Shown: piece after piece, positions 36,055-58,325 of the stretch
Layout: the number at the start of each line of letters is the position of its first letter
Numbering within the stretch: the stretch's first letter is position 1
Assembly (NCBI RefSeq): GCF_003918875.1
Contig: NW_025767021.1
Span: 248,001-312,000, forward strand
Length of the DNA: 64,000 nucleotides
Origin: Haliotis rubra
Lineage: Eukaryota
Reading direction: 5' to 3'
The notes under the pieces: model-generated
What the model was told of the DNA's origin: nothing
The model's database searches: none
What the model saw: only the letters and a program-made list of their open reading frames with translations
Program-made: the position numbers and the translations under genes

Positions 36055-39000
36055 ATGAGACCCAGGTATATTCATCTGAAAGAGTAACATACTGGCCATT
36101 GTAGGTGGAGGTATCTCTGGCCTGGTGTGTGCTGCCAGACTAGGGCAGCTGAACATCCATGATGTCACCGTGTTTGATACAGGTAATGTAGCACTCCCGG
36201 TCATATGATGGCTGCCACCACCTGTTTCTATGTTTCTGACCTGAGGAAGGAGGTACAAATATTGAAAACATTGAACCAGACCAATGGTAAATTAACCTGA
36301 AAACACTTTGTGCTTGAACAGTATTTGAAGCAGTATCAACCACTGGCAGACTGTATATGATATACACAGAGGCGTGGCAGGTGGAACCAGAGGTGAAGGT
36401 CAACATTCTAACACTCCATTGGTATTGTGGTTCTTAGTTGTAATAATTCAAGGAAATCTTTTTGAATAAAGTACATAAAGCAGTGCCTGCTTTTACAAGA
36501 TTAGAGATATTTATGTTCTCATTGCTTCACCCTGCAGGTCAAAACGCAGTGGGAGGGCGCTGTTCAACCCGCCATGTACAGATTGAGGGGAAGACATACA
36601 TATTTGATCACTCCGCCCAGTACTTTACGGTCTCTGACAAACGGTTTGCAAAAATTGTGAGTTTTCTGCATTCAAAAGGGGCAGTGAAAGTGTGGCCAGG
36701 GAAGATTGGACATCTGAAGAAGGGCAGATTCTCCACAGATGCTGGTATCACACAGGCTTTTATTGGCAGTGAGGGGATGAGGTCCGTGGTGGAGTGTCTG
36801 GCATCACTCAGTAAAGTACAGCGGCCATGTTGGGTTGGGAATGTCAGCTTCGACAGCGTGTCCAGGAAATGGCAGGTAGACAAGTATGGCTTCTTTGACT
36901 ATTTGGTTGTGGCTCATAATGGTAAGTGTGCCGACAAGCTGATGTCCAGCGCTGGAGTACCTGACGTTCACCGACTGCTGAGAGTGAGGTTTGGGGATGA
37001 GCTTGTTGTCCGGGATCACCGGATGCAGCTCTGTTCATTGTGGGTCCTACTTGTTGCCTTCAGGGAGCCACTTAAACTCTCCTTCCAGGGAGCTCATGTT
37101 GAACATCAAGATATATCATGGATTGCAAACAACACTGCCAAGCTGGGTCAGAAGTTTCCCGCAAGTAAAATTGAATGTTGGACTGTATTTAGTACAAGAG
37201 AGTTTGGTACAGCAAACAAGGTTCCCCAGGAAAACATTCCTCCCGGGGAAGGCTCAAGGTGTAACAAACAAGCTTCTAGCTGCATTCAGTCAGGCAACAG
37301 GGAAGGGCCAGCTCCCGGAAGTGGTGTATTCCCGGGTACAGTTGTGGGGGGCCGCTGTGCCCATGAATGTGCTGGCAACAGATGAAGAGTGTGTGTTTGA
37401 CAGCTTCAACAATGTGGGTGTCTGTGGGGACTGGCTGGTCAGCCCTTGTATCCAGGGAGCAGCGGTCAGCGGACTCGCGCTGGCAGAGAGGATACATCAA
37501 CACTGTAACGGTAGGAGTCATTCATTCATATATGCAATCTTTGAGAATGGTTAAATTCATAACATTTATATATGTAGGATGCTCTTTCGGAAACAAAGTG
37601 AATCTTTTGTACACAATGTGTACAAGAGATGTGCTACCCAGTTTTCTTAGAGTGTAAAGAAACGGTTGAATTCATTTTTTTGTGCTTACGACTACTAGGA
37701 CAGATGCTTGCCAGATCTCATTATAAATGTATTGTCATTTAAGGGATTTGTTTTTCAGACCCTGTAATAAATCTGTTATACATCTAGTAATCTTGCAATT
37801 GCAATGGTTCATCTGTACAAACTAAACCATTTCAGCAAACACCTTTAATTAAGTCACTGAATTTGAATATGACCCATCGCATGATGAGCATTGAAGTGTC
37901 GTGGTGTATTTTGACTCCTCTGATAGAAAACAAGATGGCATCTGGTACTGGAAAACAAGATGGCGTCTGGTACTATTATATCTCATTGTTTACAGCAAGG
38001 TTACTGTAACAACTTGAAGGCTTCATAAACTTTAGAGAGAACAAATGATTAGTCTTGGTGAGGTCGACTGTGAACTTGATCCTATCTGACCACCTCCTGT
38101 TTCAGGTACACAGGTCCTTGTTTACACATACTGACCTTCTGCAGAGTAGCTGTTTGTATAATATTGCAGTGTAAAGGATGTGCTCCCTAGGTGTTATAGA
38201 TATATTGCAGTGTAAAGGATGTGCACCCCAGGTGTTATAGATGTATTACTGTGTAAAGGATGTGCTCCCTAGGTGTTATAGATGTATTACTGTGTAAAGG
38301 ATGTGCACCCCAGGTGTTATATATGTATTGCAGTGTAAAGGATGTGCTCCCTAGGTGTTATAGATGTATTACTGTGTAAAGGATGTGCACCCCAGGTGTT
38401 ATATATGTATTGCAGTGTAAAGGATGTGCTCCCCAGGTGTTATAGATGTATTGCAGGTGATTATAGATGTATTACTGTGTAAAGGATGTGCACCCCAGGT
38501 GTTATATATGTATTGCAGTGTAAAGGATGTGCCCCAGGTGTTATAGATGTATTGCCCTGTAAAGATGTGCTCCCCAGGTGTTCTAGATGTATTGCCGCAG
38601 TGTAAAGGATGTGCTCCCCCAGGTGTTCTATATGTATTGCAGTGTAAATTGCTCCCCCAGGTGTTATATATGTATTGCGTGTAAAGGATGTGCTCTCCAG
38701 GTGTTCTCCGTGTAAAGGATATGCACCCCAGGTGGTCTAGATATATTGCAGTGTAAAGGATGTGCTCCCCAGGTGTTATAGATGTATTGCAGTGTAAAGG
38801 ATGTGCTCCCCAGGTGTTATAGATGTATTGCAGTGTAAAGGATGTGCTGCCAGGTGTATTGCAGTGTAAAGGATGTGCTGCCAGGTGTTATAGATGTATT
38901 GCAGTGTAAAGGATGTGCACCCCAGGTGTTATAGATGTATTGCAGTGTAAAGGATGTGCTCCCAGGTGTTATAGATGTATTGCAGTGTAAAGGATGTGCT

Positions 39001-41836
39001 CCCCAGGTGGTCTAGATGTATTGCAGTGTAAAGGATGTGCTCCCCAGGTGTTATAGATGTATTGCAGTGTAAAGGATGTGCACCCCAGGTGGTTCTAGAT
39101 GTATTGCAGTGTAAAGGATGTACCCCAGGTGGTCTAGATATATGGTGTAAAGGATGTGCTCCCCAGGTGTTCTAGATGTATTGCAGTGTAAAGGATGTGC
39201 ACCCCAGGTGTTCTAGATGTATTGCCGTGTAAAGGATGTGCACCCCAGGTGGTCTAGATATATTGCAGTGTAAAGGATGTGCTCCCCAGGTGTTCTAGAT
39301 GTATTGCAGTGTAAAGGATGTGCTCACCAGGTGTTATAGATGTATTGCAGTGTAAAGGATGTGCTCCCCAGGTGGTCTAGATGTATTGCAGTGTAAAGGA
39401 TGTGCTGCCAGGTGTTCTAGATGTATTGCAGTGTAAAGGATGTGCTGCCCAGGTGTTATAGATATATTGCAGTGTAAAGGATGTGCTCCCCAGGTGTTAT
39501 AGATGTATTGAAGTGTAAAGGATGTGCTCCCCAGGTGTTATAGATGTATTGCAGTGTGCACCCCAGGTGTTATAGATGACTGTGTAAAGAATGTGCTCCC
39601 AGGTGTTATAGATGTATTGCAGTGTAAAGGATGTGCACCCCAGGTGTTATAGATGTATTGCAGTGTAAAGGATGTGCTCACCAGGTGTTATAGATGTATT
39701 GCAGTGTAAAGGATGTGCTCCCAGGTGGTCTATATGTATTGCAGTGTAAAGGATGTGCTGCCAGGTGTTATAGATGTATTGCAGTGTAAAGGATGTGCTG
39801 CCCAGGTGTTATAGATATATTGCAGTGTAAAGGATGTGCTCACCAGGTGGTCTAGATGTATTGCAGTGTAAAGGATGTGCTGCCCAGGTGTTATAGATGT
39901 ATTGCAGTGTAAAGGATGTGCTCCCCAGGTGTTATAGATGTATTGCAGTGTAAAGGATGTGCTCCCCAGGTGGTCTAGATGTATTGCAGTGTAAAGGATG
40001 TGCTCCCCAGGTGTTATAGATGTATTGCAGTGTAAAGGATGTGCTGCCAGGTGTTATAGATGTATTGCAGTGTAAAGGATGTGCTTCCCAGGTGTTATAT
40101 ATGTATTGCAGTGTAAAGGATGTGCTGCCAGGTGTATTGCAGTGTAAAGGATGTGCTGCCAGGTGTTATAGATGTATTGCAGTGTAAAGGATGTGCTCCC
40201 CAGGTGTTATAGATGTATTGCAGTGTAAAGGATGTGCTCCCCAGGTGGTCTATATGTATTGCAGTGTAAAGGATGTGCTGCCAGGTGTTATAGATGTATT
40301 GCAGTGTAAAGGATGTGCTCCCCAGGTGTTATAGATGTATTGCAGTGTAAAGGATGTGCACCCCAGGTGGTATTAGATGTAATTGCAGTGTAAAGGATGT
40401 GCTCCCAGGTGTTATATAGATGTATTGCAGTGTAAAGGATGTACCCCAGGTGTTATAGATGTATTGCAGTGTAAAGAATGTGCCCCCAGGTGTTATAGAT
40501 GTATTGCAGTGTAAAGGATGTGCACCCCAGGTGTTATAGATGTATTGCAGTGTAAAGGATGTGCTCCCAGGTGTTATAGATGTATTGCAGTGTAAAGGAT
40601 GTGCTCCCCAGGTGTTATAGATGTATTGCAGTGTAAAGGATGTGCTCCCCAGGTGGTCTATATGTATTGCAGTGTAAAGGATGTGAACCCCAGGTGGTCT
40701 ATATGTATTGCAGTGTAAAGGATGTGCACCCCAGGTGTTATAGATGTATTGCCGTGTAAAGAATGTGCTCCCCAGGTGTTATAGATGTATTGCAGTGTAA
40801 AGGATGTGCTCCCCAGGTGTTATAGATGTATTGCAGTGTAAAGGATGTGCTCCCCAGGTGTTATAGATGTATTGCAGTGTAAAGGATGTGCACCCCAGGT
40901 GTTATAGATGTATTGCAGTGTAAAGGATGTGCTCCCCAGGTGTTCTAGATGTATTGCAGTGTAAAGGATGTGCACCCCAGGTGTTATAGATGTATTGCAG
41001 TGTAAAGGATGTACCCCAGGTGTTATAGATGTATTGCAGTGTAAAGGATGTGCTCCCCAGGTGTTATATATGTATTGCAGTGTAAAGGATGTGCACCCCA
41101 GGTGTTATAGATGTATTGCAGTGTAAAGGATGTGCACCCCAGGTGGTCTATATGTATTGCAGTGTAAAGGATGTGCACCCCAGGTGGTCTATATGTATGT
41201 AAAGGATTGCAGGTGTATGTATTGCAGTGTAAAGGATGTGCACCCCAGGTGTTATATATGTATTGCAGTGTAAAGGATGTGCTACCCAGGTGTTCTATAT
41301 GTATTGCAGTGTAAAGGATGTTCTACCCAGGTGTTCTAGATGTATTGCAGTGTAAAGGATGTTCTACCCAGGTGTTCTAGATGTATTGCCGTGTAAAGGA
41401 TGTGCACCCCAGGTGTTCTATATGTATTGCAGTGTAAAGGATGTGCTCCCCAGGTGGTCTAGATGTATTGCAGTGTAAAGGATGTTCTACCCAGGTGTTC
41501 TAGATGTATTGCAGTGTAAAGGATGTGCTCCCCAGGTGTTTATGAGGCTCACATTCTGTTGTTTTCTTTGCAGTGTAACATCTATAGTTCCGAGGTTTCG
41601 TTGTCATGGTTATCTGGCATAATGTACAGAGGTATTCTGTTTAATCTTTTCATACTTTTAAGACTTTAATGCAACTTTAATACAATCCAATGAAGTAAGA
41701 CAAAACACCATCTTATGTTTCAGGACTGGTCACCACCAGCACCAGTTTGAAACCTGTGTTTGTGCCGGCCAGTGGTCACATTATAGGAGCCTTCCCCACA
41801 GACCAGAACATGATCTTCACTCCCAGCAAGTCATAG
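36055..41836 (+). CDS. FAD/NAD(P)-dependent oxidoreductase, renalase superfamily (plant At3g04650-like); start unresolved, apparent frameshift(s)
   Basis: Exons ~36055/36080-36182 (ILAIVGGGISGLVCAARL...VTVFDTG), 36538-37510 (GGRCSTR, FDHSAQYFTV, NKVPQENIP, QLWGAAVP, GVCGDWL, AAVSGLALA; +1 shift at ~37245) and 41724-41836 (…GHIIGAFPTDQNMIFTPSKS*). Junction phases agree (1/1). Confidence 0.85.
38160..41540. repeat. Intronic minisatellite, ~41-bp unit (tattgcagtgtaaaggatgtgctccccaggtgttatagatg), about 80 copies
   Basis: Directly visible tandem array in the last intron of the oxidoreductase. Confidence 0.97.
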
Positions 41837-41965: not shown

Positions 41966-42150
41966 ACACTTGGGAAGTGGACAAATAAACACATTGCATG
42001 TGCACTTTGTGAACCTGATGGTTTGTTCTCCATTTTAGATCATGTGGCGTATGTTTGTTGTTGACAAACATGAAACTTGTCTTGTTACTTACATGTGTTT
42101 AGAAACATTGTTGAACATTTGTGAACATGGTCATAAGAGGATTCAGCCTC

Positions 42151-43770
42151 TATGTCTCATGTCAGTGTAACCTGGTCAGTGTGGATGTTTCTCCACTACA
42201 GCTCATTATACAGTATATAGTGTAAAGATGTGTGTGAGTCTATGTCTAGTGTCAGTGTAACCTGGTCAGTGTGGATGTTTCTCCACTACAGCTCATTATA
42301 CAGTATATAGTGTAAAGATGTGTGTGAGTCTATGTCTCGTGTCAGTGAAACCTGGTCAGTGTGGATGTTTCTCCACTACAGCTCATTATACAGTATATAG
42401 TGTAAAGATGTGTGTGAGTCTATGTCTCGTGTCAGTGTAAATTGGTCAGTGGGGATGTTTCTCCACTACAGCTCATTATACAGTATATAGTGTAAAGATG
42501 TGTGAGTCTATGTCTCGTGTCAGTGTAACCTGGTCAGTGTGGATGTTTCTCCACTACAGCTCATTATACAGTATATAGTGTAAAGATGTGTGTGAGTCTA
42601 TGTCTCGTGTCAGTGAAACCTGGTCAGTGTGGATGTTTCTCCACTACAGCTCATTATACAGTATATAGTGTAAAATGTGTGTGAGTCTATGTCTCAGTGG
42701 TCAGTGAAACCTGGCCAGTGGGGATGTTTCTCAACTACAGCTCATTATACAGTATATAGTGTAAAGATGTGTGTGAGTCTATGTCTCGTGTCAGTGAAAC
42801 CTGGTCAGTGTGGATGTTTCTCCACTACAGCTCATTATACAGTATATAGTGTAAAGATGTGTGTGAGTCTATGTCCGTGTCAGTGAAACCTGGTCAGTGT
42901 GGATGTTTCTCCACTACAGCTCATTATACAGTATATAGTGTAAAGATGTGTGTGAGTCTATGTCTCGTCGTCAGTGAAACCTGGTCAGTGTGGATGTTTC
43001 TCCACTACAGCTCATTATACAGTATATAGTGTAAAGATGTGTGTGAGTCTATGTCTCGTGTCAGTGTAACCTGGTCAGTGTGGATGTTTCTCCACTACAG
43101 CTCATTATACAGTATATAGTGTAAAGATGTGTGTGAGTCTATGTCTAGTGTCAGTGTAACCTGGTCAGTGTGGATGTTTCTCCACTACAGCTCATTATAC
43201 AGTATATAGTGTAAAGATGTGTGTGAGTCTATGTCTCGTGTCAGTGAAACCTGGTCAGTGTGGATGTTTCTCCACTACAGCTCATTATACAGTATATAGT
43301 GTAAAGATGTGTGTGAGTCTATGTCTCGCGGTCAGTGTAACCTGGTCAGTGTGGATGTTTCTCCACTACAGCTCATTATACAGTATATAGTGTAAAGATG
43401 TGTGTGAGTCTATGTCTCGTGTCAGTGTAACCTGGTCAGTGTGGATGTTTCTCCACTACAGCTCATTATACAGTATATAGTGTAAAGATGTGTGTGAGTC
43501 TATGTCTCAGTGTCAGTGTAACCTGGTCAGTGTGGATGTTTCTCCACTACAGCTCATTATACAGTATATAGTGTAAAGATGTGTGTGAGTCTATGTCTCG
43601 TGTCAGTGAAACCTGGTCAGTGTGGATGTTTCTCCACTACAGCTCATTATACAGTATATAGTGTAAAGATGTGTGTGAGTCTATGTCTCGTGTCAGTGTA
43701 ACCTGGTCAGTGGGGATGTTTCTCCACTACAGCTCATTATACAGTATATAGTGTAAAGATGTGTGTGAGT
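42151..43770. repeat. Homogeneous 90-bp satellite, about 18 copies
   Basis: Unit tatgtctcgtgtcagtgtaacctggtcagtgtggatgtttctccactacagctcattatacagtatatagtgtaaagatgtgtgtgagtc. Confidence 0.97.
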
Positions 43771-45049
43771 TATGTTCTGATTAAAAGACACATATTGTGA
43801 AGTGATTATACTCTGTGTGTTTATCAATAGTAGTGTTGGTAAACCAAGGGTAGACTGATGTATGGATGAGGTGAGTGTCGACAATAGTGGTGGGGGTCAT
43901 CAATAGTAGTGTGGGTACCAAATATACAGCATTCTCTAATGCAAACCCAGCAAAATTCTATGCTTTCTGGTCCTCCTTCCATACACTTTTTGCTAATTAT
44001 ACCAATTTAGATGTTCTTTAAATATAACGCAATTTGACAGTACATCTGAATATTTGTATACATATTAGCCTTTGGGTAAAGATAGCAGATATACAGTACA
44101 ACCAGAAATTATTGAGAATTTAAGATTGTAAATTTTCATGTATTTATGTGTGTATAGACAATCTAGTGAAGATATGTTTAGGGTAGTCAACTTACTGTAA
44201 AACCTTTTAAAGCTCAATTGATTGTAACAAACTCGTGTCGACAAACTTTGAAAGGTAATAACAAACTAAAGGGTGTGATATTTACTAGATTTATTATATA
44301 AAATAACTGACAAAAACAAGTTCACTTCAAAGTTGTTTGAACATTTTGTTTATGTTATGCATACAAGAGAGATTAAATAGGCATATGGTATATACAATGA
44401 CAGGTACTGACTTCCTCAAATCTTCAACACATATGTACATACAGTATACTGATAGTACACATAATGTATCCACACTGGTGACTGATACGTCTATCAGAGG
44501 ATCTAATACAATCAAATAAACAGTAATCAATTTGATACCAAATACTGTTTGTTCATGATCAAGAACGGATCATTCTATTGCATTTTGGCTTTATTTCATC
44601 GCAGCTGTGATATGCATAGACAAGAGTTGATCAAAACTACTACTTCATGAAGTAAAACAACAAGGTAATAAATAAAGGGTAAAAGTCTCTAAAGATGGAG
44701 ATGGGGATCTGACAGTGTAAAACAACGACCTTGTGTAGAGACGATACAAACATGTAATGGTCATCCAAATGGTTAAGTTGAGAACCAAGTTGAGCAATAT
44801 AACAACATGGTGATCGTTAAGTCAGTCATCTCCATAGTAACTGTTCAAGGAGACTATATCACAGGATGACATCAAAAGGAAAATTCTCGCTATCTGAACA
44901 TTACCTTCTTCAGGTAACAAACATGAATGAAAGGAAATTCCTGCCTGTTAAATGCAATATTTGAAAATTCTTTGAGTTAAGTAGTGCCTTATTTAAACAT
45001 GAGATTTTCATAAGAGTATGTCAGTGATGAACATCAGGTAGTCAAGCCA

Positions 45050-46804: not shown

Positions 46805-49800
46805 CTATTTGTCCTTCTTGGCTTCAATAACACCATTAGCCGTTACGACGCTACCGTTCCTCTTGTGGCCCCGTGTAGTACCATTTGCAACTTTTCCATT
46901 GGCGACCTGGGCCTTTGACTCTCCTCCCTGCAGCACAAGCAATTTGTGATGTAGACATGTGAATCAGTAACTGATGGACACGACTTGTAATAAGATGGTT
47001 TAGCAGGCAATGGTTTGATCTGATTAAGACAAAAATGATCTTTGAAGAAATGCTGTATTTTTATTGTGAAAAAGCTGTATCAGGACATACTGTCTTGATT
47101 AATTTAAGCAGGTTTTAAGAAGAAATACTTTTCATCCTTCAAGCTCCAACAAGTTTAAATTGAAAATGAGCTTGATGTTTTTACACCCATGAAAACTGTG
47201 TGACTATATGGGTCAAGTTCCCCAATCCCTTGTACTTACTGACAGGTCCACTGTGAATGGCTATAAACATGATCTTTGGACTCCTATATACACCTACCCA
47301 TAATACAGCATAGTAACCCTTACCCATTGTATAACCTAATACCTACCCATAATACAGCATAGTAACCCTCACCCATTGTATAACCTAATACCTACCCATA
47401 ATACAGCATAGTACCACAGATAGCATAACCCTCACCCATTGTATAACCTAATACCTACCCATAATACAGCATAGTACCACAGATAGCATAGCCCTCACCC
47501 ATTGTATAACCTAATACCTACCCATAATACAACATAGTACCACAGATAGCATAACCCTCACCCATTGTATAACCTAATACCTACCCATAATACAGCATAG
47601 TACCACAGATAGCATAACCCCTCACCCATTGTATAACCTAATACCTACTAATACCTACCCATAATACAGCATAGTACCACAGATAGCATAACCCTCACCC
47701 ATTGTATAACCTAATACCTACCCATAATACAGCATAGTACCACAGATAGCATAACCCTCACCCATTGTATAACCTAATACCTACCCATAATACAGCATAG
47801 TACCACAGATAGCATAACCCTCACCCATTGTATAACCTAATACCTACCCATAATACAGCATAGTACCACAGATAGCATAACCCTCACCCATTGTATAACC
47901 TAATACCTACCCATAATACAGCATAGTACCACAGATAGCATAACCCTCACCCATTGTATAACCTAATACCTACCCATAATACAGCATAGTACCACAGATA
48001 GCATAACCCTCACCCATTGTATAACCTAATACCTACCCATAATACAGCATAGTACCACAGATAGCATAACCCTCACCCATTGTATAACCTAATACCTACC
48101 CATAATACAGCATAGTACCACAGATAGCATAACCCTCACCCATTGTATAACCTAATACCTACCCATAATACAGCATAGTACCACCAATAGCATAACCCTC
48201 ACACCCATTGTATAACCTAATACCTACCCATAATACAGCATAGTACCACAGATAGCATAACCCTCACCCATTGTATAACCTAATACCTACCCATAATACA
48301 GCATGGTACCACAGATAGCATAACCCTCACCCATTGTATAACCTAATACCTACCCATAATACAGCATGGTACCACCAATAGCATAACCCTCACCCATTGT
48401 ATAACCTAATACCTACCCATAATACAGCATGGTACCACCAATAGCATAACCCTCACCCACTGTATAACCTAATACCTACACATAATACAGCATAGTACCA
48501 CCAATAGCATAACCCTCACCCATTGTATAACCTAATACCTACCCATAATACAGCATGGTACCACCAATAGCATAACCCTCACCCATTGTATAACCTAATA
48601 CCTGCCCATAATACAGCATGGTACCACCAATAGCATAACCCTCACCCACTGTATAACCTAATACCTGCCCATAATACAGCATGGTACCACCAATAGCATA
48701 ACCCTCACCCATTGTATAACCTAATACCTGCCCATAATACAGCATGGTACCACCAATAGCATAACCCTCACCCACTGTATAACCTAATACCTGCCCATAA
48801 TACAGCATGGTACCACCAATAGCATAACCCTCACCCATTGTATAACCTAATATCGTACCTACCCTTAACACAGCATAGTACCACATAGCATAACTCTCAC
48901 CCACTGTATCACATAATACCTACCCATAACTAAAGCATATAACCACCCATTGTGAAGTATATTACCCATCTCAAATGGAGCATAGTACCAACCCATTATC
49001 CAGCATAATACTCACCCATACTAAAGCCTAATACCTAACCATAATAAAGCATAATAAAGCATAATACCCACCCATAATAAAGCCTAATGTCTCAACCATT
49101 ATCAAGCCTAATGCCCACCTTAAAAATGCATAAGACCCAGCAATAAAGACACTACTATCCAAGTATTTCTGAACTGTAAGTAACCAACCCACAACCATTT
49201 CCAGCACTATCATGAGAACCATGAGATAACTGTCCTGATGAGGTAACCAACCTCCATCCCCAGAGTCACTGTTCTTTAAGTATGGAAAATCATGTTTTGC
49301 CATCAATACTGAACCGTGGTGAGGACACCAAGCTGTCCTCAGAGGAAGCAAAGTTTGGGGTCATGGATTTACCTTGGTCTTGGCTGATCGAGATTTCAAG
49401 TAGGTGTGGAAGTAGAAGTTGAGAAACAGAAGAAGAATGGTGAATGCGTAAAATATCAACGCCCAGTGTAGAGCTTCCGGGAAGTCGCAACCTTTACCCA
49501 GCGACTGAACAGCATGCACGATTCCGGTCACAAACTGAATCTAAAATGGCACAAAAAACAAAAAGCGTAAAAAACAAATTTACCTTTGATTTAGACGTGG
49601 GCTTTTTCTTGAGGTATGCTTGGATGTAAAAGTTGATAAATAGGGTGATAATTGTTATTCCATAGACTAGGCCCGCATACTGCATCCAATTGGGAAAGTC
49701 GCACTCTATTAACAATCCTTGGATTCCGTACACCATTCCGATAAAGAATTGGAGCTACAAGCAGAAGAGAAATACGCATGCATAAAGGATGTGCCGCAGC

Positions 49801-52800
49801 ACCAAGCTTGCTTTAGGTCTAGCAATCAGTGAGGATTCATTCACCATTATTTACTGTTACATGGAAGAACGTGAACATTGAACCATGCCTGTCAATATTG
49901 TACACTATGTTAGTTTCATGTAAACCAATGAAAGTCAGGTTGGAAGATATTGCGATATGACAAGGACAAGGAAATAACCTTTTTACAATGTATGTACATG
50001 AGAAAGAGGAGCATTCTTAATTCCATTTTCAAAATACATAATTTTGTGTTGATTTTTGGACTTCATTTTGATTTCAGTAATTACAATTTGTATCTTATAC
50101 ATACGGTAAACTGCCATTGTCATATCATAAGGTTGACGCAGGAATGTATGACTGGAAGTGACAGATAGGAAATGGAATTCCTGGCATGCCTACACAAGAT
50201 AATCGAAGGGAGTATGAAACCAGATGTTGCTACCATATTAACATATCTTCTGAACTAGCCATAAAAATTCGCGAATGTATTTATTGGACACACAAAGTTT
50301 TCAAGCAGAGCACAAGTGTGGGTGCAAAAACATGGAAAGTTTTCAAAAGAAACTATTTTAGAAAACATTCCCACACAGATTTCAACTCATTCAGACAGAC
50401 ACATTTCAAAGGAGAGCACACTTTGAAACACACTTTGTTTCATTTAATTTACCAACTTTCAAACTCTCTGGTTTTAACGAGGATGGTAGGTCAGGGTATT
50501 TTTCTGAGAAGCATTTGACTTTTGTTGAACAGCGCATAAATGTATTAGTATGAGGTGCATTACATCAAGCTTCAGGATCTGTTAGATCAAGCATTAGTTT
50601 ATAAGAAGCAGAAGCACCAGCCTAGCACTAGCCATTGCTGATTGAAAGAGGAGAGAAGCAAGAAGAAAGCAAGGGTAAGAGAGGATATCATTGCATGAAA
50701 CCTACGTGGCCATGTTGTTTCTGGTTAAACTGATAATCATAACAGTAAATGATGCCCCAAAACAGCCTGATCCATCAAATTGATGATGATGCACAAGTTC
50801 TCATTTCGATTTTAAAAGTTGTTTTAGTTTCACATTTTCTAAATAGACGTATTCTTGTTGATGTTTTCATGAGACCTCATAGGGATATTACTCATGATCT
50901 GGGCATGGTCTGTCAGTCACCATAGAGCACAGCTTGGTTAGCCAACCTTTGGGCTAAACACTTGATATCCTGATGACCTACCAGTCAATGTTTATTAAGA
51001 CATTGCACCTAACTCTAGACCACAGTTAAATTCACAAGAAGAAAACAGACCAGCCATTGGTCACAATGACTACCACTCATTTACAGTGGTGACTGGGTGC
51101 CTGAATCGCATTTAATGCCTCTGAACAATTAGTTCTATGATGGCTTCTTATCTCAGGTGCCATTGTACAAAGTGATCTTAGCATTAAGGTGATCATAACT
51201 CCTATGGCTTAACATAGACTCGGCGGTGGGATAGCCTAGTGGTTAAAGCGTTGACTCGTCACGCCGAAGGCCCGGGTTCGATTCCCCACATGGGCACAAT
51301 GTGTTAAGCCCATTTCTTGTGTCCCCCGCCGTGATATTGCTGGAATATTGCTAAAAGCGGCGTAAAACTAAACTCAGTCAGTCAGTAACATAGACTCACA
51401 ACAGTTTTAACATTGATGTTGCTTTGTACAACGGTACCTAGTGTGGGATATATAGCCATTGTGATGTGGCTTGTGTTCTCAGGTAGCCAATAAGCACAGG
51501 TATGGTGCAAACAAACCAAGGATTATGATTAGTGCAAATGTGGGATAATTTCATTAGATCCTGGCACAGCAAAGGGAGACAACTCTGTTTAATGAATTAA
51601 AGCTACCACCACTGGGCCATATTTACCTCAAGTGGGTAGTGCATGGTAGGGTAGAATCACTATCCATCTTGTCTAAGTGGATCAAAGTGGATAGTGATGC
51701 CCGGACGAGTCTAGTGCAGGATGGGGCTACAGAAGCAGGTACCCAAAGCACAAGGCTGTCATAGAGCTAAGGTGGACATAACTCGGATACTGTAGCATAG
51801 GCTTACAACAGTCCTGGTGCTAAGATCATTTTGTGCAACAGGACCATGAAGGACGAAGGATGGGCTACAGAAGGTGGTGGTGGAAATACACGACACGATA
51901 AATGCACGTAAAAGGAAACTAAGGGATATATGGAGGAAAGTAATGGATAATATGTCACTAGGGAAAGTAAACAATATACGAGGGATAATAAACCCAATAA
52001 CACAGTAAAGATGTATCTACAAACATGGTTTCTATGTAAAACTTGATGCTAGGCAAGCTTGTCTGCTAACAACACTAGGTTTGCATGCGTACTTCAATAT
52101 CCATTGCTAGCTCCATTCTTACAAGGAAACTAAGGAGAAACCACTCTGTGATGGTATATCATCTTCACAAATGTGACATATGAAAATGCAGATTAATCTT
52201 CACTCCACACAGGATTCATAACTGACAGAATGTGGAGGTAACCTGTTGTCATGACATACCATCACCCTGATTAATGAACAAATGTTATATATCAGAATAC
52301 AAAACTAGGCTGCATTGGTGGATCCAGAGGGGGGGTTCAGGTTCCCACCCCCACCCCCGAAAATGACTTAAGACCACATTGAAGATTTTTGGGGGGGGTT
52401 CAGGGTGTTCGAAAAAAAACCCACCAACCCCCCCACCCTCGAAATTCCAGGATCCGCCTATGGGCTGGACTATTTCTCAAAACAAGAAAATGAAGTGTAC
52501 TAAAAAGTAAATGAATAAAAACTAAATGTTACAAAATGGGATAAAATGGATTAAAACAAGGTTAAATTATGAATTGAAAATATTACAAAATAGGTCAGGA
52601 AGGAAGAGATGGGAAAAACAAGCAAAACATTTATATCATTTGCAAAATATCTCACTAAGTACGATCAAGATTAGAATTAGTAACCCATGCTTGTCGTAAG
52701 AAGCAACTAACAGGATCGGGTGGTCAGGCTCACTGACTCCCAGTTGCATAGATCCATGCTCATACTGTTGATAATTCTATTGTCTGGTCCAAATTCGATT

Positions 52801-55800
52801 ATTTTTAGACCACCACCATATAGCTGGAATATTGCTGAGTGTGGCATTAAACAATAAAGAAAGAAAACAAACCAAACATTCAAGTATATGCTCTACAGGC
52901 AAAAACACTCTATGGCAACTCAACTAGAAGCATCTTTGTCACTGTGAATCATGGATCATGGAAGTCCGTCAAGATCCGGGTTAGAATTGGTCTTCAGTAA
53001 CCCATGCTTATCGTAAGAGGCAACTAACGGGATCGGGTGGTCACTATCCCGACACAAAGAATTAAAACATTCCATCACCTGTCACTTCAGAATGACCTTT
53101 ACTCTGACCGATTCCAAATGCTGGACATTGTCTACATCTCACTTAAATGGGATAAACATTTGAAAGGAAGAGATTTTCAGAGCCTATGGGATGTAATTAA
53201 GTACAATTTTAGCCATTTATTGGCGATTCCAGAATTTCCTTTTTTCATATTTCATATTCTGAATCACCCCCATTTTCAAACTAGTGCTGGTAAATTTAAG
53301 AATGCAGTTTAAGCATTTGCTTTTGGATATACAAATGTTGACTTCCTGTCAGTTATTTCATTCGGCTGGTTGAAGTTTGCAGAAGACGTCTCTGACGTGA
53401 CATGTAATGTTATGTCCTAAGACTTATTGCTTTGCAGAAGCAAGAACTAAGATCTGATTAATATGAAATTTCCCTTCAACAGTGTAACCTGCATATGAAC
53501 AAAACTATGCAAAGATGTGGCATCAACTAACAACAGAATACTCTAAACGGTAAACGTAGCGATGACACAAAAAGAAAGAGCTTCAAAATCTGATCATGAA
53601 TTATTGAAAACAAACAGCACTAAACACCAAATAAGTGGTCAAATAGCTAATGTAGGAAGAATTAATTCTAACCACATTTACAATCTACACTATCTACCAA
53701 GTTAATAACTATCAAAGTTAATGCAGAAGTTCATCTGGGTCAATTCCAACGAAATGGACCTAACATTTTTCAGACAGTGGTCTACCCAGAATGCATGGAC
53801 ATACAGGTGTATCACTCATCTTGCCCACAAACTTCAGGATCCCTTGGGCTTTTTTAGAATAGTAATATGTAAAATTATCAAAACCAATGGCTCTTATCCC
53901 TGCCATGAAGTTGTAATCAGTGCTTTCTGCTGATAGCAAGGTGTCCTTGAACTATAACAAGTGGCCTTGACCTTTATCTACATTCCAGTATGGAGTGAGC
54001 GAGAAACACACTGCACTTTGTGTTATGGGGAAACCAATGGACTGAGAATGCTGACACATGCATGCCCTTGTGGTACACTCAAGACAGCTGCCCACACTCG
54101 CATGTCCAGCAGGATTGGGTGACCCAATTTCAGTTGGTGCCAGAAAATCTGATACATTATTCCATCAAATAATGATGTGTGATGGTGCACAATCCTGCCA
54201 CTCATGTGTCAGCTATCTCAGCCCTACACCGGTCAACAGCATGCAGTAACAGTCAAACAAGGACTCACCAGTTGGAGTTTGGTCAGGTAGCGCTTCCACC
54301 AAAGGTATTTTTGGTACTCTGGTCCAAGAGCCGACACGCCGTAGTATGTGTACATCACAACATGGATGAATGAGTTGATCATGGCACCGAAGAAGGCTGG
54401 AAAGTCAACATTTACAGGAAGGTCAAATCAATTTATTGGACAATTATCAAAGATTATAATGCATAAGCCATAGGCTTAAAAAGACCTTCTCCTCAAATAC
54501 ACTCTTCTTTGTCATTAAGATTTTGTTCATTTATTACTAGTGTAGGATTGAGATTTCTATCATGGTGTTAACTAATATTACAAAAACAAAGATCCTCCAC
54601 TTCTTAATTTTAGGTTGCCCCTCTCAAAATCATTATTCTTTTTTTTTAAACATATCTTTGTTCTCGTCTTGTTTTCAAACTTGAATGCGTGACCCTAAAT
54701 TGAGCATGTATTTCAAAATTTTGTTTTTAATGAAATCATCCACACACAAAAACATCAGTCCAATAAAAGATCTTGAACGAAAATATCTTGTACCCTGTGT
54801 GTATTCAGTAAAAGAATAGAGTTGGTTCAATATGTTCTGGTATACTCACACTGTCCGCCGGCCACCCACTTGATGCCGATCCACCAGATGGGAAACATGG
54901 AGGCGTGGTGGTACACGTGCAGGAAACTCACTTGGTTGTCCTTCTTCCGCATGATGAAGAATATAGTGTCCAACATCTCCACACACTTGGAGAAGTAAAA
55001 CCACCACAGAGCACTGGCTATCTGGAGGCCAAACACAGACACGTTACACAGGCTCTCACAGACAATACAGGCTGATAACAGACACATTGTACAGGCACTC
55101 ACAGACAATACACGTTACACATGCACTCGCAGACAATACAGGCTGATAACAGACACGTTACACAGGCACTCACAGACAATACAGGCTGATAACAGACACG
55201 TTACACAGGCACTCACAGACACGTTACACAGGCACTCACAGACAATACAGGCTGATAACAGACACATTATACAGGCACTCACAGACAATACAGGCTGATA
55301 ACAGACACATTGTACAGGCACTCGCAGACAATACAGGCTGATAACAGACACATTGTACAGGCACTCGCAGACAATACAGGCTGATAACAGACACGTTACA
55401 CAGGCATAACAGACGTTACACAGGCACTTTCGAGACACGTTACACAGGCACTCACAGACCCGTTACACAGGCACTTTCGCAGACAATACAGGCTGATAAC
55501 AGACATGTTACACAGGACAGACAGTACAGGCTGATAACAGACACGTTACACAGGCTGATAACAGACACACGTTACACAGGCACTCGCTGACACGTTACAC
55601 AGGCACTCACAGACCCGTTACACAGGCACTCGCAGACAATACAGGCTGATAACAGACACGTTACACAGGCACTCGCAGACAAGTACAGGCTGATAACAGA
55701 CCGCGTTACACAGGCACTCACAGACACGTTACACAGGCTCTCGCAGACAATACAGGCTGATAACAGACACGCTACACAGGCAGGCACTCGCAGACAATAC

Positions 55801-58325
55801 AGGCTGATAACAGACACATTACACACAGGCACTCACAGACACGCTACACAGGCACTGCAGACAATACAGGCTGATAACAGACACGTTACACAGGCACTCA
55901 CAGACAATACAGGCTGATAACAGACACGTTACACAGGCACTCACAGACACGTTACACAGGCACTCGCAGACAATACAGGCTGATAACAGACACGTTACAC
56001 AGGCACTCACAGACAATACAGGCTGATAACAGACACGTTACACAGGCACTCACAGACAATACAGGCTGATAACAGACACGTTACACAGGCACTCACAGAC
56101 ACGTTACACAGGCACTCGCAGACAATACAGGCTGATAACAGACACGTTACACAGGCACTCACAGACAATACAGGCTGATAACAGACACGCAATACAGGCC
56201 AAAAACAGACACGCACAGGCACTCAGCTGCACCTGGACAATACAGGCTGATAACAGACACTATGCTACACAGACACTCGCAGACAATACAGGGCAATAGT
56301 AGACATGTGCCAGTTCTAACAATTTATAATTGACAATATAGCTGCACCCTTAAATTTCACCTGCTCAACCAACTAAAAGTAACACACTGACATGCATAAA
56401 CTACTAACTACTACTACTTTGACCACCACTACTAAATACTACTACTAAATACTACTACTACTAAATACTACCACTACTAAATACTACTACTACTACTACT
56501 AAATACTACTACTAAATACTACTACTACTACTACTACTACTACTATTACTACTACCACCACCACTACTACTACAACTACTACTACCACTACTGTCTTACC
56601 TTCATTTCACCATGGTCGTTGGTGTAGTTGACCGGCTGACAAGAATAACTATAATTTAACTTTGTTGAATACCATAGAAGCTGAAACAGGAAAGAAATTA
56701 CTTTGCAGTCATAAATATAATAAAAAAAACAATATCTCAACATTACTGCACAAACAATTTCATTTCTATAAACAGTGCATACAATTTTCTTCACATTGGT
56801 ACAAAGTGAAACTATAATGTTGTTCTGATCTAAGACTAGGACTGTTGTCTTCTTAACACATGCCAATACTGAAACATGCATTACTATAGAAATAAGAGAT
56901 GATTTAATGACTATATTTCCACTACATTGCTCATGTAATATTAGCTTTATGTGTGAGCAATGACAGACTTCTTCAAGTCTCTAAAATCCACAAATTATTG
57001 ACACAAACTTACCTGTGAGCATATATGAAAGTTCATCACAATTAAACCAAAATTGTAGAAAAATAACGTCCATTTGAATTTAAACGGCTCTCTGTCTTTC
57101 ATTATTTTTGGCCCAACCCATACTGCAAACAAGTACAATGCTGTGATGGCTAGTGTGGGTGTGTAGCTTTGCATTAAAAACCAGTCCTTGACTCGGTCAT
57201 CTGGAAAAGAGCAGAAAAACACACATCACACACACAATAAATATTACCGCTGATAACCCAAATAAAATACTTGATAGCAATGCACATTTTTAAGCCCATG
57301 TCTTACTAATGGATTCTGCTTTAGTGTGTTAGACATAACGTGTGTTTCATAAGTGTGGAAAGATCAAACAGCATTTCAGCTGCAATAATGGTGTACAGTG
57401 GCCATACAGAGGCAGGCGTCAACTGTATTTGAAGAACATCCAGTTAAAGAGATCAATAAATTTTTCAATCCAATGGGCTCAAAAGCTTTCTACTTTTCAG
57501 CCCATGTACTGAATAACAAAGGAGGCTTAAAAATGTGCAGCCTTTGTACACTCTTTTCACTAATTTAGGGTATGTGACCCTTACGTTTTTACATAAACCA
57601 AACAATTTTAAAACAAATGGACTCGTCAATTAAAAAGTCTACAACCATTCAATTAAACGCCAATAATTAGGATTTTAATCTATCCAAGAGAAAATAACAA
57701 ATGTACCCTGAAAAGATTTGTTCCGTTAGTGGCACATGTCAATAAATTAATTAGTACAATGAGCATTAGTTTATGATAACGTGAAGTAACACCAGAAACC
57801 TGTACTCCAAACACAGTGGGGAATAATACTTCTTTTATTTATGGATCAGAAAATTGATTCAATTTCAAAGTAAGTGCCCTCCCCCCTTCCCTCATGTCAT
57901 GTACAAAATCAATTACCCCTCGCCCCTTTCCCATAATTTTAAAGCATTATTTTTTAATATAATTAATATAATTATGTACAAAATTGCAGACCCCCTAGTA
58001 CATGTGTACAGAATTGCTGAGCCCCCACCTCCCCAGAACAAAATGGGTGATCCCCTTCCTTCTCCTCACCCCACCCTCCCCCAACCACCCCTTAAAATCA
58101 CTCTCATCCCCTAGCCATAAATTATGAATCGTCCCCAAGTGAATAAATCTGCCCGTATACAAACACGCTATTTCTTGTCAGGATGTTCAGTAAGTGCACA
58201 TTGTGAAATGGGAACACAATATGTCTCAATAATGGTGTTACAGACACACAACACCAACCTGTTCGTGTTAGTGCCCATGCATAGAACTTCTGAAAATGTT
58301 CAACTTTATCTGTAATCAGCTCCAT
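46805..58325 (-). CDS. ELOVL4: Very-long-chain fatty acid elongase, ELOVL4-like, with a duplicated exon 6
   Basis: Exons 58325-58259, 57200-57013 (188), 56680-56600 (81), 55021-54850 (172), 54396-54269 (128), 6a 49754-49584 or 6b 49540-49373, and 46927-46805. Motifs [38 protein letters not shown]; C-terminal KKDK* ER-retention signal. Sizes 188/81/172/128 match vertebrate ELOVL4 as I recall it. Confidence 0.92.
47290..48930. repeat. Intronic 63-bp minisatellite, about 25 copies
   Basis: Unit acctacccataatacagcatagtaccacagatagcataaccctcacccattgtataacctaat; lies in the last ELOVL intron. Confidence 0.96.
49373..49540 (-). CDS. ELOVL4: ELOVL4-like alternative exon 6b (TM6-TM7)
   Basis: ccattttag|ATT...AAG|gtaaat, 168 nt, phase 0-0: [56 protein letters not shown]. 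Not in the ORF track. Confidence 0.9.
49584..49754 (-). CDS. ELOVL4: ELOVL4-like alternative exon 6a (TM6-TM7)
   Basis: ttctgcttgtag|CTC...AAG|gtaaat, 171 nt, phase 0-0: [57 protein letters not shown]. Confidence 0.9.
51222..51385 (+). mobile_element. SINE family A, full length with 12-bp TSD
   Basis: tagcctagtggttaaagcg...gggttcgattcccc; (tcag)n tail; TSD taacatagactc at 51210-51221 and 51386-51397. Confidence 0.92.
52313..52462. mobile_element. Short GC-rich MITE
   Basis: Imperfect TIRs cattggtggatcc ... ggatccgcctatg with internal G/C tracts. Confidence 0.55.
52665..53045 (+). mobile_element. Two SINE family C fragments (52665-52860 and ~52960-53045)
   Basis: Repeated agtaacccatgctt(g/a)tcgtaaga(a/g)gcaactaac(a/g)ggatcgggtggtca; the first continues into atagctggaatattgctgag...ttaaacaa. 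Confidence 0.7.
54420..54778. mobile_element. Possible MITE in ELOVL intron 4
   Basis: Imperfect inverted termini ggtcaaatcaatttattggac / gtccaataaaagatcttgaac. Confidence 0.4.
55034..56290. repeat. Minisatellite with 43-bp unit (20+23-bp subunits) abutting the ELOVL exon 4 acceptor
   Basis: agacaatacaggctgataac + agacacgttacacaggcactcac repeated; explains the Cys/Val-rich ORFs at 55115-56222. Confidence 0.95.
56400..56591. repeat. (TAC)n microsatellite next to the ELOVL exon 3 donor
   Basis: Imperfect ctactactac run. Confidence 0.92.

Follow-up and report, generated by a model that had tools for sequence, protein, structure and literature searches.

Mutually exclusive use of neighbouring exons has been described in several genes. 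In alpha-tropomyosin, exons 2 and 3 exclude one another through a branch point placed too near the upstream donor, and the Dscam and 14-3-3zeta exon clusters rely on docking-selector RNA pairing. Here we analysed a 64,000-nt stretch of the genome of the abalone Haliotis rubra (RefSeq assembly GCF_003918875.1, contig NW_025767021.1, positions 248,001 to 312,000; the whole stretch is called the window), which carries on its minus strand an ELOVL4-like elongase gene with two tandem exons, 6a and 6b, each encoding transmembrane helices (TM) 6 and 7. The coding sequence (CDS) spliced with 6a was identical to H. rubra XP_046576948.1 (RefSeq isoform X1, 309 aa, P0303) and the CDS spliced with 6b was identical to H. 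rubra XP_046576949.1 (RefSeq isoform X2, 308 aa, P0302), indicating that the window holds the H. rubra ELOVL4-like locus and that both splice forms are already in RefSeq. We consider it very probable that 6a and 6b are an old, mutually exclusive pair in an ELOVL4-like gene, with one of them present per mRNA, and we infer two steps within this reading: exclusion by the short spacer between the exons and retuning of the acyl-binding tunnel. Each mRNA would take either 6a or 6b between exon 5 and the last exon, and two full-length enzymes with seven TM helices would result, 309 and 308 aa long.

The anatomy of the two exons is that of a mutually exclusive pair: they are adjacent and homologous, have a similar length and share the same phase. 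Both minus-strand open reading frames (ORFs) are uninterrupted (57 aa for 6a and 56 aa for 6b) and both exon lengths are multiples of 3. Each exon is preceded by AG and followed by GTAAAT, with a pyrimidine tract upstream. At the protein level, 24 of 57 residues are identical (42%), and the two exons matched each other at E ~1e-12 when tblastn was run within the 64-kb window; this search found no further copy of the TM6-TM7 exon in the window, the next best match having an E value of 0.2. The juxtamembrane tails read KKKPTSKSK in 6a and KSRSAKTK in 6b. An earlier note on this DNA had proposed tandem exons of 171 nt and 168 nt separated by 43 nt, with a Tyr in TM6 of 6a and an ELOVL4-like His in 6b. 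Its coordinates, phase (0-0) and AG/GT sites were right to the base, the separation was found again on the minus strand, and the Tyr/His difference proved to be one fully diagnostic position. Separately, a representative search returned P0127, an unrelated ELOVL-like fragment from another organism in which the beginning of the TM6 exon is partly repeated in tandem, which hints that this exon was duplicated more than once.

Comparison of isoforms across species supported the use of one exon at a time, as the earlier note had proposed. In addition to the exact matches to X1 and X2, isoforms were identical outside residues ~213-269 in 11 of the 12 species pairs checked (H. rubra, H. rufescens, H. 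cracherodii, Gigantopelta, Dreissena, Sinonovacula, Saccostrea, Biomphalaria, Aplysia, Argopecten and the annelid Owenia). The twelfth pair, from oyster, was taken from different sequencing runs and showed a few additional polymorphisms. Further RefSeq pairs with either exon were found in Lingula, Tubulanus, Littorina, Pomacea, Mya, two Mytilus species and Babylonia, and every RefSeq isoform checked has one of the two exons. The oyster isoform with the 6a-like exon (hereafter A type, the 6b-like exon being B type) was present as an uninterrupted 897-nt ORF on at least 10 contigs of 1.6-3 kb from several runs, with the A type alone on them; because the ORF is uninterrupted on such short contigs, these can only be mRNA. 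Cloned cDNAs from the razor clam Sinonovacula constricta also contain a single exon each, the B/His exon in Elovl4_a (QCF41171.1) and the A/Tyr exon in Elovl4_b (QCF41172.1). None of ~50 full-length relatives from assemblies rather than genome annotation contained both exons together. Mature transcripts with exactly one exon are thus documented in relatives by cloned cDNAs and mRNA contigs; in Haliotis they are suggested by the RefSeq X1 and X2 models.

How exclusion may be enforced is suggested by the spacer itself, which measures 42-43 nt in three Haliotis species and keeps a TTTTTAC motif in all of them. In H. rubra, this YTNAY-like motif provides a candidate branch point for 6b, predicted from sequence; its A (49568) lies 16 nt away from the donor of 6a and 27 nt away from the acceptor of 6b, and the pyrimidine tract comes after it. 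A spliceosome assembled on the 6a donor would clash with one on the 6b branch point by steric hindrance. Exon 6a would then join the last exon, or it would be removed together with intron 5 as exon 5 joins 6b. Splicing of 6a to 6b in Haliotis would be prevented by the combination of a 43-nt spacer and a likely branch point ~16 nt from the donor.

Some observations weigh against the reading of 6a and 6b as an exclusive pair separated by a spacer too short to splice. Capitella teleta splices a constitutive 51-nt intron in the same gene, between exon 5 and its single TM6-7 exon (L014:3840-3890), so the spacers of 59-65 nt found in other lineages are not obviously too short, and the steric argument would be strong only for the 42-43 nt spacers of Haliotis. 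Seven GenBank submitter models (from Sinanodonta, Nucella, Elysia, Biomphalaria and Bulinus) splice a directly to b; these were treated as prediction artefacts, which leaves room for minor co-inclusion. Co-inclusion would stay in frame (171 + 168 nt), and since both exons are multiples of three, nonsense-mediated decay would be unable to police it. Finally, the use of 6a in Haliotis itself is suggested by RefSeq models and conservation rather than by junction counts. As a separate observation, the Capitella intron provides a benchmark for short spliced introns in a spiralian.

The first of these points favours the alternative that exclusion is real but enforced by regulated splice-site competition or competing RNA structures instead of the short spacer, since the spacers of the chiton, Lingula and bivalves exceed the intron that Capitella splices. 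Identity of introns among the three Haliotis species is ~76-81%, and it rises to ~95% in the spacer and in the ~130 nt upstream of 6a, an unusually conserved segment that could hold regulatory elements. On the other hand, the spacer is 42-65 nt in every lineage examined, suggesting that its length is itself constrained, and the lineages with a short spacer diverged more than 500 million years ago. An ungapped scan with shuffles, covering exon b at seven loci, detected no pairing of the upstream intron with exon b that was above chance or shared in position. We consider this alternative rather unlikely, though it deserves the most weight among those discussed here. A candidate docking-selector structure, in which exon 6b and the intron preceding 6a share a 14-nt inverted repeat, was rejected; it fell within the range of shuffles and its position was not conserved. 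Independently, the motif GCTTGGTG occurs twice on the minus strand, at 49810-49818, ~60 nt before 6a, and at 49318-49326, ~50 nt beyond 6b (approximate positions, read by eye from the alignment). The downstream copy is a conserved island among the three Haliotis in an otherwise diverged stretch. It could be a site for a shared regulator, or it could be chance.

To describe what the swap changes in the protein, AlphaFold models of both isoforms were used. Both predicted structures have the seven long helices of the ELOVL fold (pLDDT 84 and 82, ~90 in TM6-7), with TM6 at residues 204-227 and TM7 starting at residue 234. The 6a model, the one compared with the PDB, matched human ELOVL7 (6Y7F) with an E value of 5e-19, a TM-score of 0.91 and an rmsd of 1.9 Å. 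Abalone residue numbering coincides with that of human ELOVL7. According to the preprint on the ELOVL7 structure (10.1101/2020.11.11.378570), Q214 lies in the decarboxylation pocket, F238 and I242 lie in the acyl pocket, F253 is beside the cysteamine, R266 binds the CoA diphosphate, and TM4/TM7 are proposed to form a lateral substrate gate. Exon 6 covers Q214, most of TM6, the lumenal loop, TM7 with the positions of F238, I242, F253 and R266, the basic juxtamembrane tail and one side of this gate. X1 and X2 have the catalytic core in common (HxxHH, N177, H181 and Q211), and Q214, F215, C230, Y243, F251, F254, Y255 and Y259 are invariant in both exon types. Differences between the types were scored in 21 A exons and 20 B exons. 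Position 221 is Tyr in 21/21 A exons and His in 20/20 B exons; position 240 is Gly, Ala, Ser or Cys in A and Leu or Val in B, without overlap. Position 242 is occupied by a small residue in A and mostly by Phe in B, and a strong bias is likewise seen at positions 216, 245, 248 and 256.

According to a published study (PMC4746653), one Trp/Cys exchange where TM7 begins is enough to move Elovl2/5 between C18 and C22 substrates. Because the A/B differences fall at tunnel-facing positions and this Elovl2/5 residue lies nearby, an altered tunnel shape, hence a different substrate or chain-length range, is the most likely effect of the swap, as judged from alignments and predicted models. Exchanging 6a for 6b would retune the acyl-binding tunnel and thereby the substrate or chain-length preference. 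Alternatively, the isoforms might differ in oligomerisation, in binding to partners of the elongase complex, in stability, or in retention in or trafficking from the endoplasmic reticulum (ER), and not in substrate choice. In agreement with such a role, all the invariant catalytic residues are kept in both isoforms, the juxtamembrane tails differ, and the ELOVL7 crystal dimer makes its contacts through TM6 and TM7. The authors of that structure, however, call the interface of this crystal dimer small and not conserved (10.1101/2020.11.11.378570). The cleanest A/B positions (221, 240 and 242) map to tunnel-lining helix faces in ELOVL7 numbering, and the nearby Elovl2/5 residue alters chain-length range. 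We regard a role unrelated to substrate as unlikely.

Routine inclusion of both exons, which would produce a protein with nine TM helices, was considered and rejected, as was misassembly, as an explanation of the exon pair. Joint inclusion would keep the frame and is written into the seven submitter models, but these are genome-annotation predictions, neither RefSeq nor transcripts, whereas cloned cDNAs, mRNA contigs and every RefSeq isoform have a single exon. A 43-nt intron with a branch point ~16 nt from its donor would also be an improbable substrate for splicing. Joint inclusion as the normal state is therefore very improbable.

Substitution counts within Haliotis indicated that both exons are under strong purifying selection, in line with the selection on both copies that the earlier note had suggested. 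Relative to H. rufescens, 6a had 0/171 substitutions, 6b had 6/168 and the constitutive exons had 46/741 (6.2%); relative to H. asinina, the counts were 1/171, 3/168 and 36/748, respectively. By our own arithmetic, the chance of observing 0/171 at the rate of the constitutive exons is ~2e-5. Exon 6a is the most constrained exon of the gene, synonymous sites included, a pattern typical of regulated alternative exons. It is also intact in the genomes of H. asinina and the chiton, where the B isoform alone is annotated. The notion that 6a is an unused, decaying duplicate, to which this annotation might point, was rejected as barely credible, since 6a is intact in both genomes, evolves more slowly than any other exon of the gene, is conserved in type across four phyla and is present in mRNA contigs.

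The earlier note had also described the duplication as old and had called for a check of both exons in other molluscs. Tandem A and B exons were found in the genomes of Lingula and the chiton Liolophura, where 59 nt and 63 nt, respectively, separate them, and on two bivalve-like contigs with spacers of 61 and 65 nt. When 66 exon peptides were placed in a tree, the A exons grouped together (SH-aLRT 91), and the B exons formed a group (SH-aLRT 99) that also took in single-exon spiralian sequences; with an alignment of just 51 columns, the tree does not fix the inner branching order. The A clade and the B clade each include molluscs, a brachiopod and Owenia. Because both clades span these groups and tandem exons or isoforms occur across phyla, the duplication predates the split of these phyla. 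The A/B switch is common to molluscs, brachiopods, nemerteans (ribbon worms) and an annelid, so the age proposed in the note stood, and the switch reaches beyond the molluscs at which the note's check was aimed. The Tyr221 A type was seen in spiralians only, apart from one flatworm paralogue on a long branch. As a side observation, the B exon of one bivalve-like contig (ENA ERZ25069870, L001:10145-10215) is ~10 nt short at its 5' end compared with other species and has no phase-0 acceptor that keeps the frame; its other 50 codons are intact and conserved, and it may reflect either an assembly indel or a recently disabled exon.

Exon distribution in other lineages suggests that some of them have since dropped this ancient duplication or divided it between separate genes. 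Octopus and Capitella have the B exon only. Solemya velum has two tandem ELOVL4-like genes, 51% identical, one with the A exon only and the other with the B exon only (L009:10001-40930), and the exon switch may there have been resolved into two genes. The ELOVL4-like gene of Lottia gigantea is a single 867-nt intronless ORF of B type (L008:2001-2867), which has the appearance of a B-isoform retrocopy that took the place of the multi-exon gene; the Patella protein has the same length as the Lottia protein. Isoforms of amphioxus and Octopus differ elsewhere in the protein, not in the TM6-TM7 exon.

A broader proposal is put forward tentatively. A switch that arose before the divergence of molluscs, brachiopods, nemerteans and annelids might toggle a tunnel-facing His/Tyr together with several acyl-pocket residues of ELOVL4, so that one gene yields two elongases of unlike chain-length or unsaturation range, and lineages that lost it might have substituted for it by other means. 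If so, the substitutes would be gene duplication (Solemya, perhaps flatworms and nereidid annelids), the B exon only (Octopus and Capitella) and a B-type intronless copy (Lottia). The group would then offer a natural repeated experiment on splicing and gene duplication as substitutes for one another, and a ready-made map of the determinants of ELOVL specificity. The A and B exons are natural chimeras that swap residues 213-269 only, with invariable differences at just 221 and 240, which points to few residues as candidates for setting chain length in ELOVL enzymes.

A full-text literature search, which did not cover Ran et al. 2019, found no description of mutually exclusive splicing of any invertebrate ELOVL or of the age of this switch. 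Ran et al. 2019 (BBA 1864:1083) reportedly cloned and assayed Elovl4_a and Elovl4_b of Sinonovacula constricta. The earlier note put the novelty too high: no paper on the switch was found, but RefSeq already lists the isoforms of many molluscs, and those of the razor clam have been cloned. What is new is the reading as an exon switch, the finding that four phyla conserve it, and the diagnostic residues. Work on polyunsaturated fatty acid (PUFA) synthesis in molluscs counts elongase "genes" and assays each singly; oyster isoforms X1 and X2 were given as separate entries by Surm et al. 2015, and according to a paper on Platynereis, a single Elovl4 is usual in invertebrates. Such gene counts would change once the isoforms are recognised as the output of a single gene, and splicing would become a possible control point for long-chain and very-long-chain PUFA in farmed shellfish.

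The features of the locus are collected in the table; exons other than 6a and 6b were placed by ORF listing and by aligning relatives.

Table. Features of the Haliotis rubra ELOVL4-like gene, in window coordinates.
Feature	Position	Strand	Remarks
Exon 1, coding part	58259..58325	-	ATG of MELITDK at start; ends in phase 1; in spliced CDS
Exon 2, TM1-TM2	57013..57200	-	ORF listing and alignment of relatives
Exon 3	56600..56680	-	ORF listing and alignment of relatives
Exon 4, HVYHH histidine box	54850..55021	-	ends in phase 1
Exon 5, TM5, N177, H181	54269..54396	-	ends YLTKLQL, including Q211; phase 0 donor
Upstream intronic flank of 6a	49755..49890	-	conserved; holds polypyrimidine tract and 3' splice site of 6a
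Exon 6a, A type	49584..49754	-	171 nt, phase 0-0; residues 213-269 of X1; Q214, Tyr221, TM6, TM7, basic tail
6a/6b spacer	49541..49583	-	43 nt, GT..AG, AT-rich; pyrimidine tract of 6b; candidate branch point read from sequence
Exon 6b, B type	49373..49540	-	168 nt, phase 0-0; residues 213-268 of X2; Q214, His221, TM6, TM7, basic tail
Last coding exon	46805..46927	-	ends EAKKDK-stop; KKXX-type ER retention signal

The encoded protein has the hallmarks of the ELO/ELOVL enzymes. PF01151 is recorded for its protein cluster, the HxxHH box is present as HVYHH at 147-151, and the C-terminal KKDK is the di-lysine ER retention signal of this family. K124, D130, H150, H151, N177, H181, Q211 and Q214, which are reported to be essential in EloA/ELOVL7, are all invariant columns in a 139-sequence alignment with either isoform as head. 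Vertebrate ELOVL4 was among the matches, at ~52-55% identity, and sources call the gene and its relatives "ELOVL4-like", an assignment based on name and matches. Mollusc Elovl4 expressed in yeast gave products up to C34, according to papers cited in PMC11286186. The H. rubra assembly contains two copies of the gene, on contigs of 2.6 Mb and 1.1 Mb, each with X1 and X2 isoforms. What distinguishes the copies (P0304/P0218 and P0303/P0302) is a single Leu inserted in FFIM(L)RKK, which the copy in the window lacks; they may be haplotigs or the result of a recent duplication.

Tandem repeats occupy two introns and the region downstream of the gene. A 63-nt minisatellite (~25 copies, 95% matches) at 47363-48946, between 6b and the last exon, produces long spurious ORFs on the minus strand, and in H. 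rufescens and H. asinina the equivalent intron also holds arrays of this unit. The intron between exons 3 and 4 contains a degenerate tandem array with a 43-nt unit at 55035-56292 (also read as 66, 109 or 152 nt), with repeated pseudo-ORFs. Downstream of the gene, satellites at 38162-41540 (41-nt unit, ~75 copies) and 42149-43775 (90-nt unit, 18 copies) both coincide with a strong positive GC skew at 38-44 kb.

Compared with the systems described at the outset, the abalone gene shares with the Dscam and 14-3-3zeta clusters the arrangement of tandem homologous exons from which one is chosen; unlike them, it has two variants only, and the pairing scan, which covered exon b, showed no intron-exon or intron-intron complementarity that was conserved and rose above chance. 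It resembles alpha-tropomyosin exons 2 and 3 in its adjacent alternative exons and very short intron, with the candidate branch point and the pyrimidine tract of the downstream exon filling the spacer, an arrangement that would keep the two exons from being joined. It differs from alpha-tropomyosin in that 6a and 6b are homologous copies of each other, that including both would keep the frame and that the branch point is predicted. The clam counterpart of abalone X1 and X2 is the Sinonovacula Elovl4_a/Elovl4_b pair, whose proteins are identical outside the exon; they were deposited as two named elongases, and the accessible text does not mention an origin from a single gene by mutually exclusive splicing. 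As an enzyme, the abalone elongase has the predicted fold of human ELOVL7 (6Y7F) and shares with it and with vertebrate ELOVL4 the same catalytic residues at the same numbering. His221 of 6b is as in ELOVL7 and vertebrate ELOVL4. The abalone gene differs in having two exon types: only one TM6-7 type was present in the sequences examined from amphioxus and from vertebrate ELOVL4.

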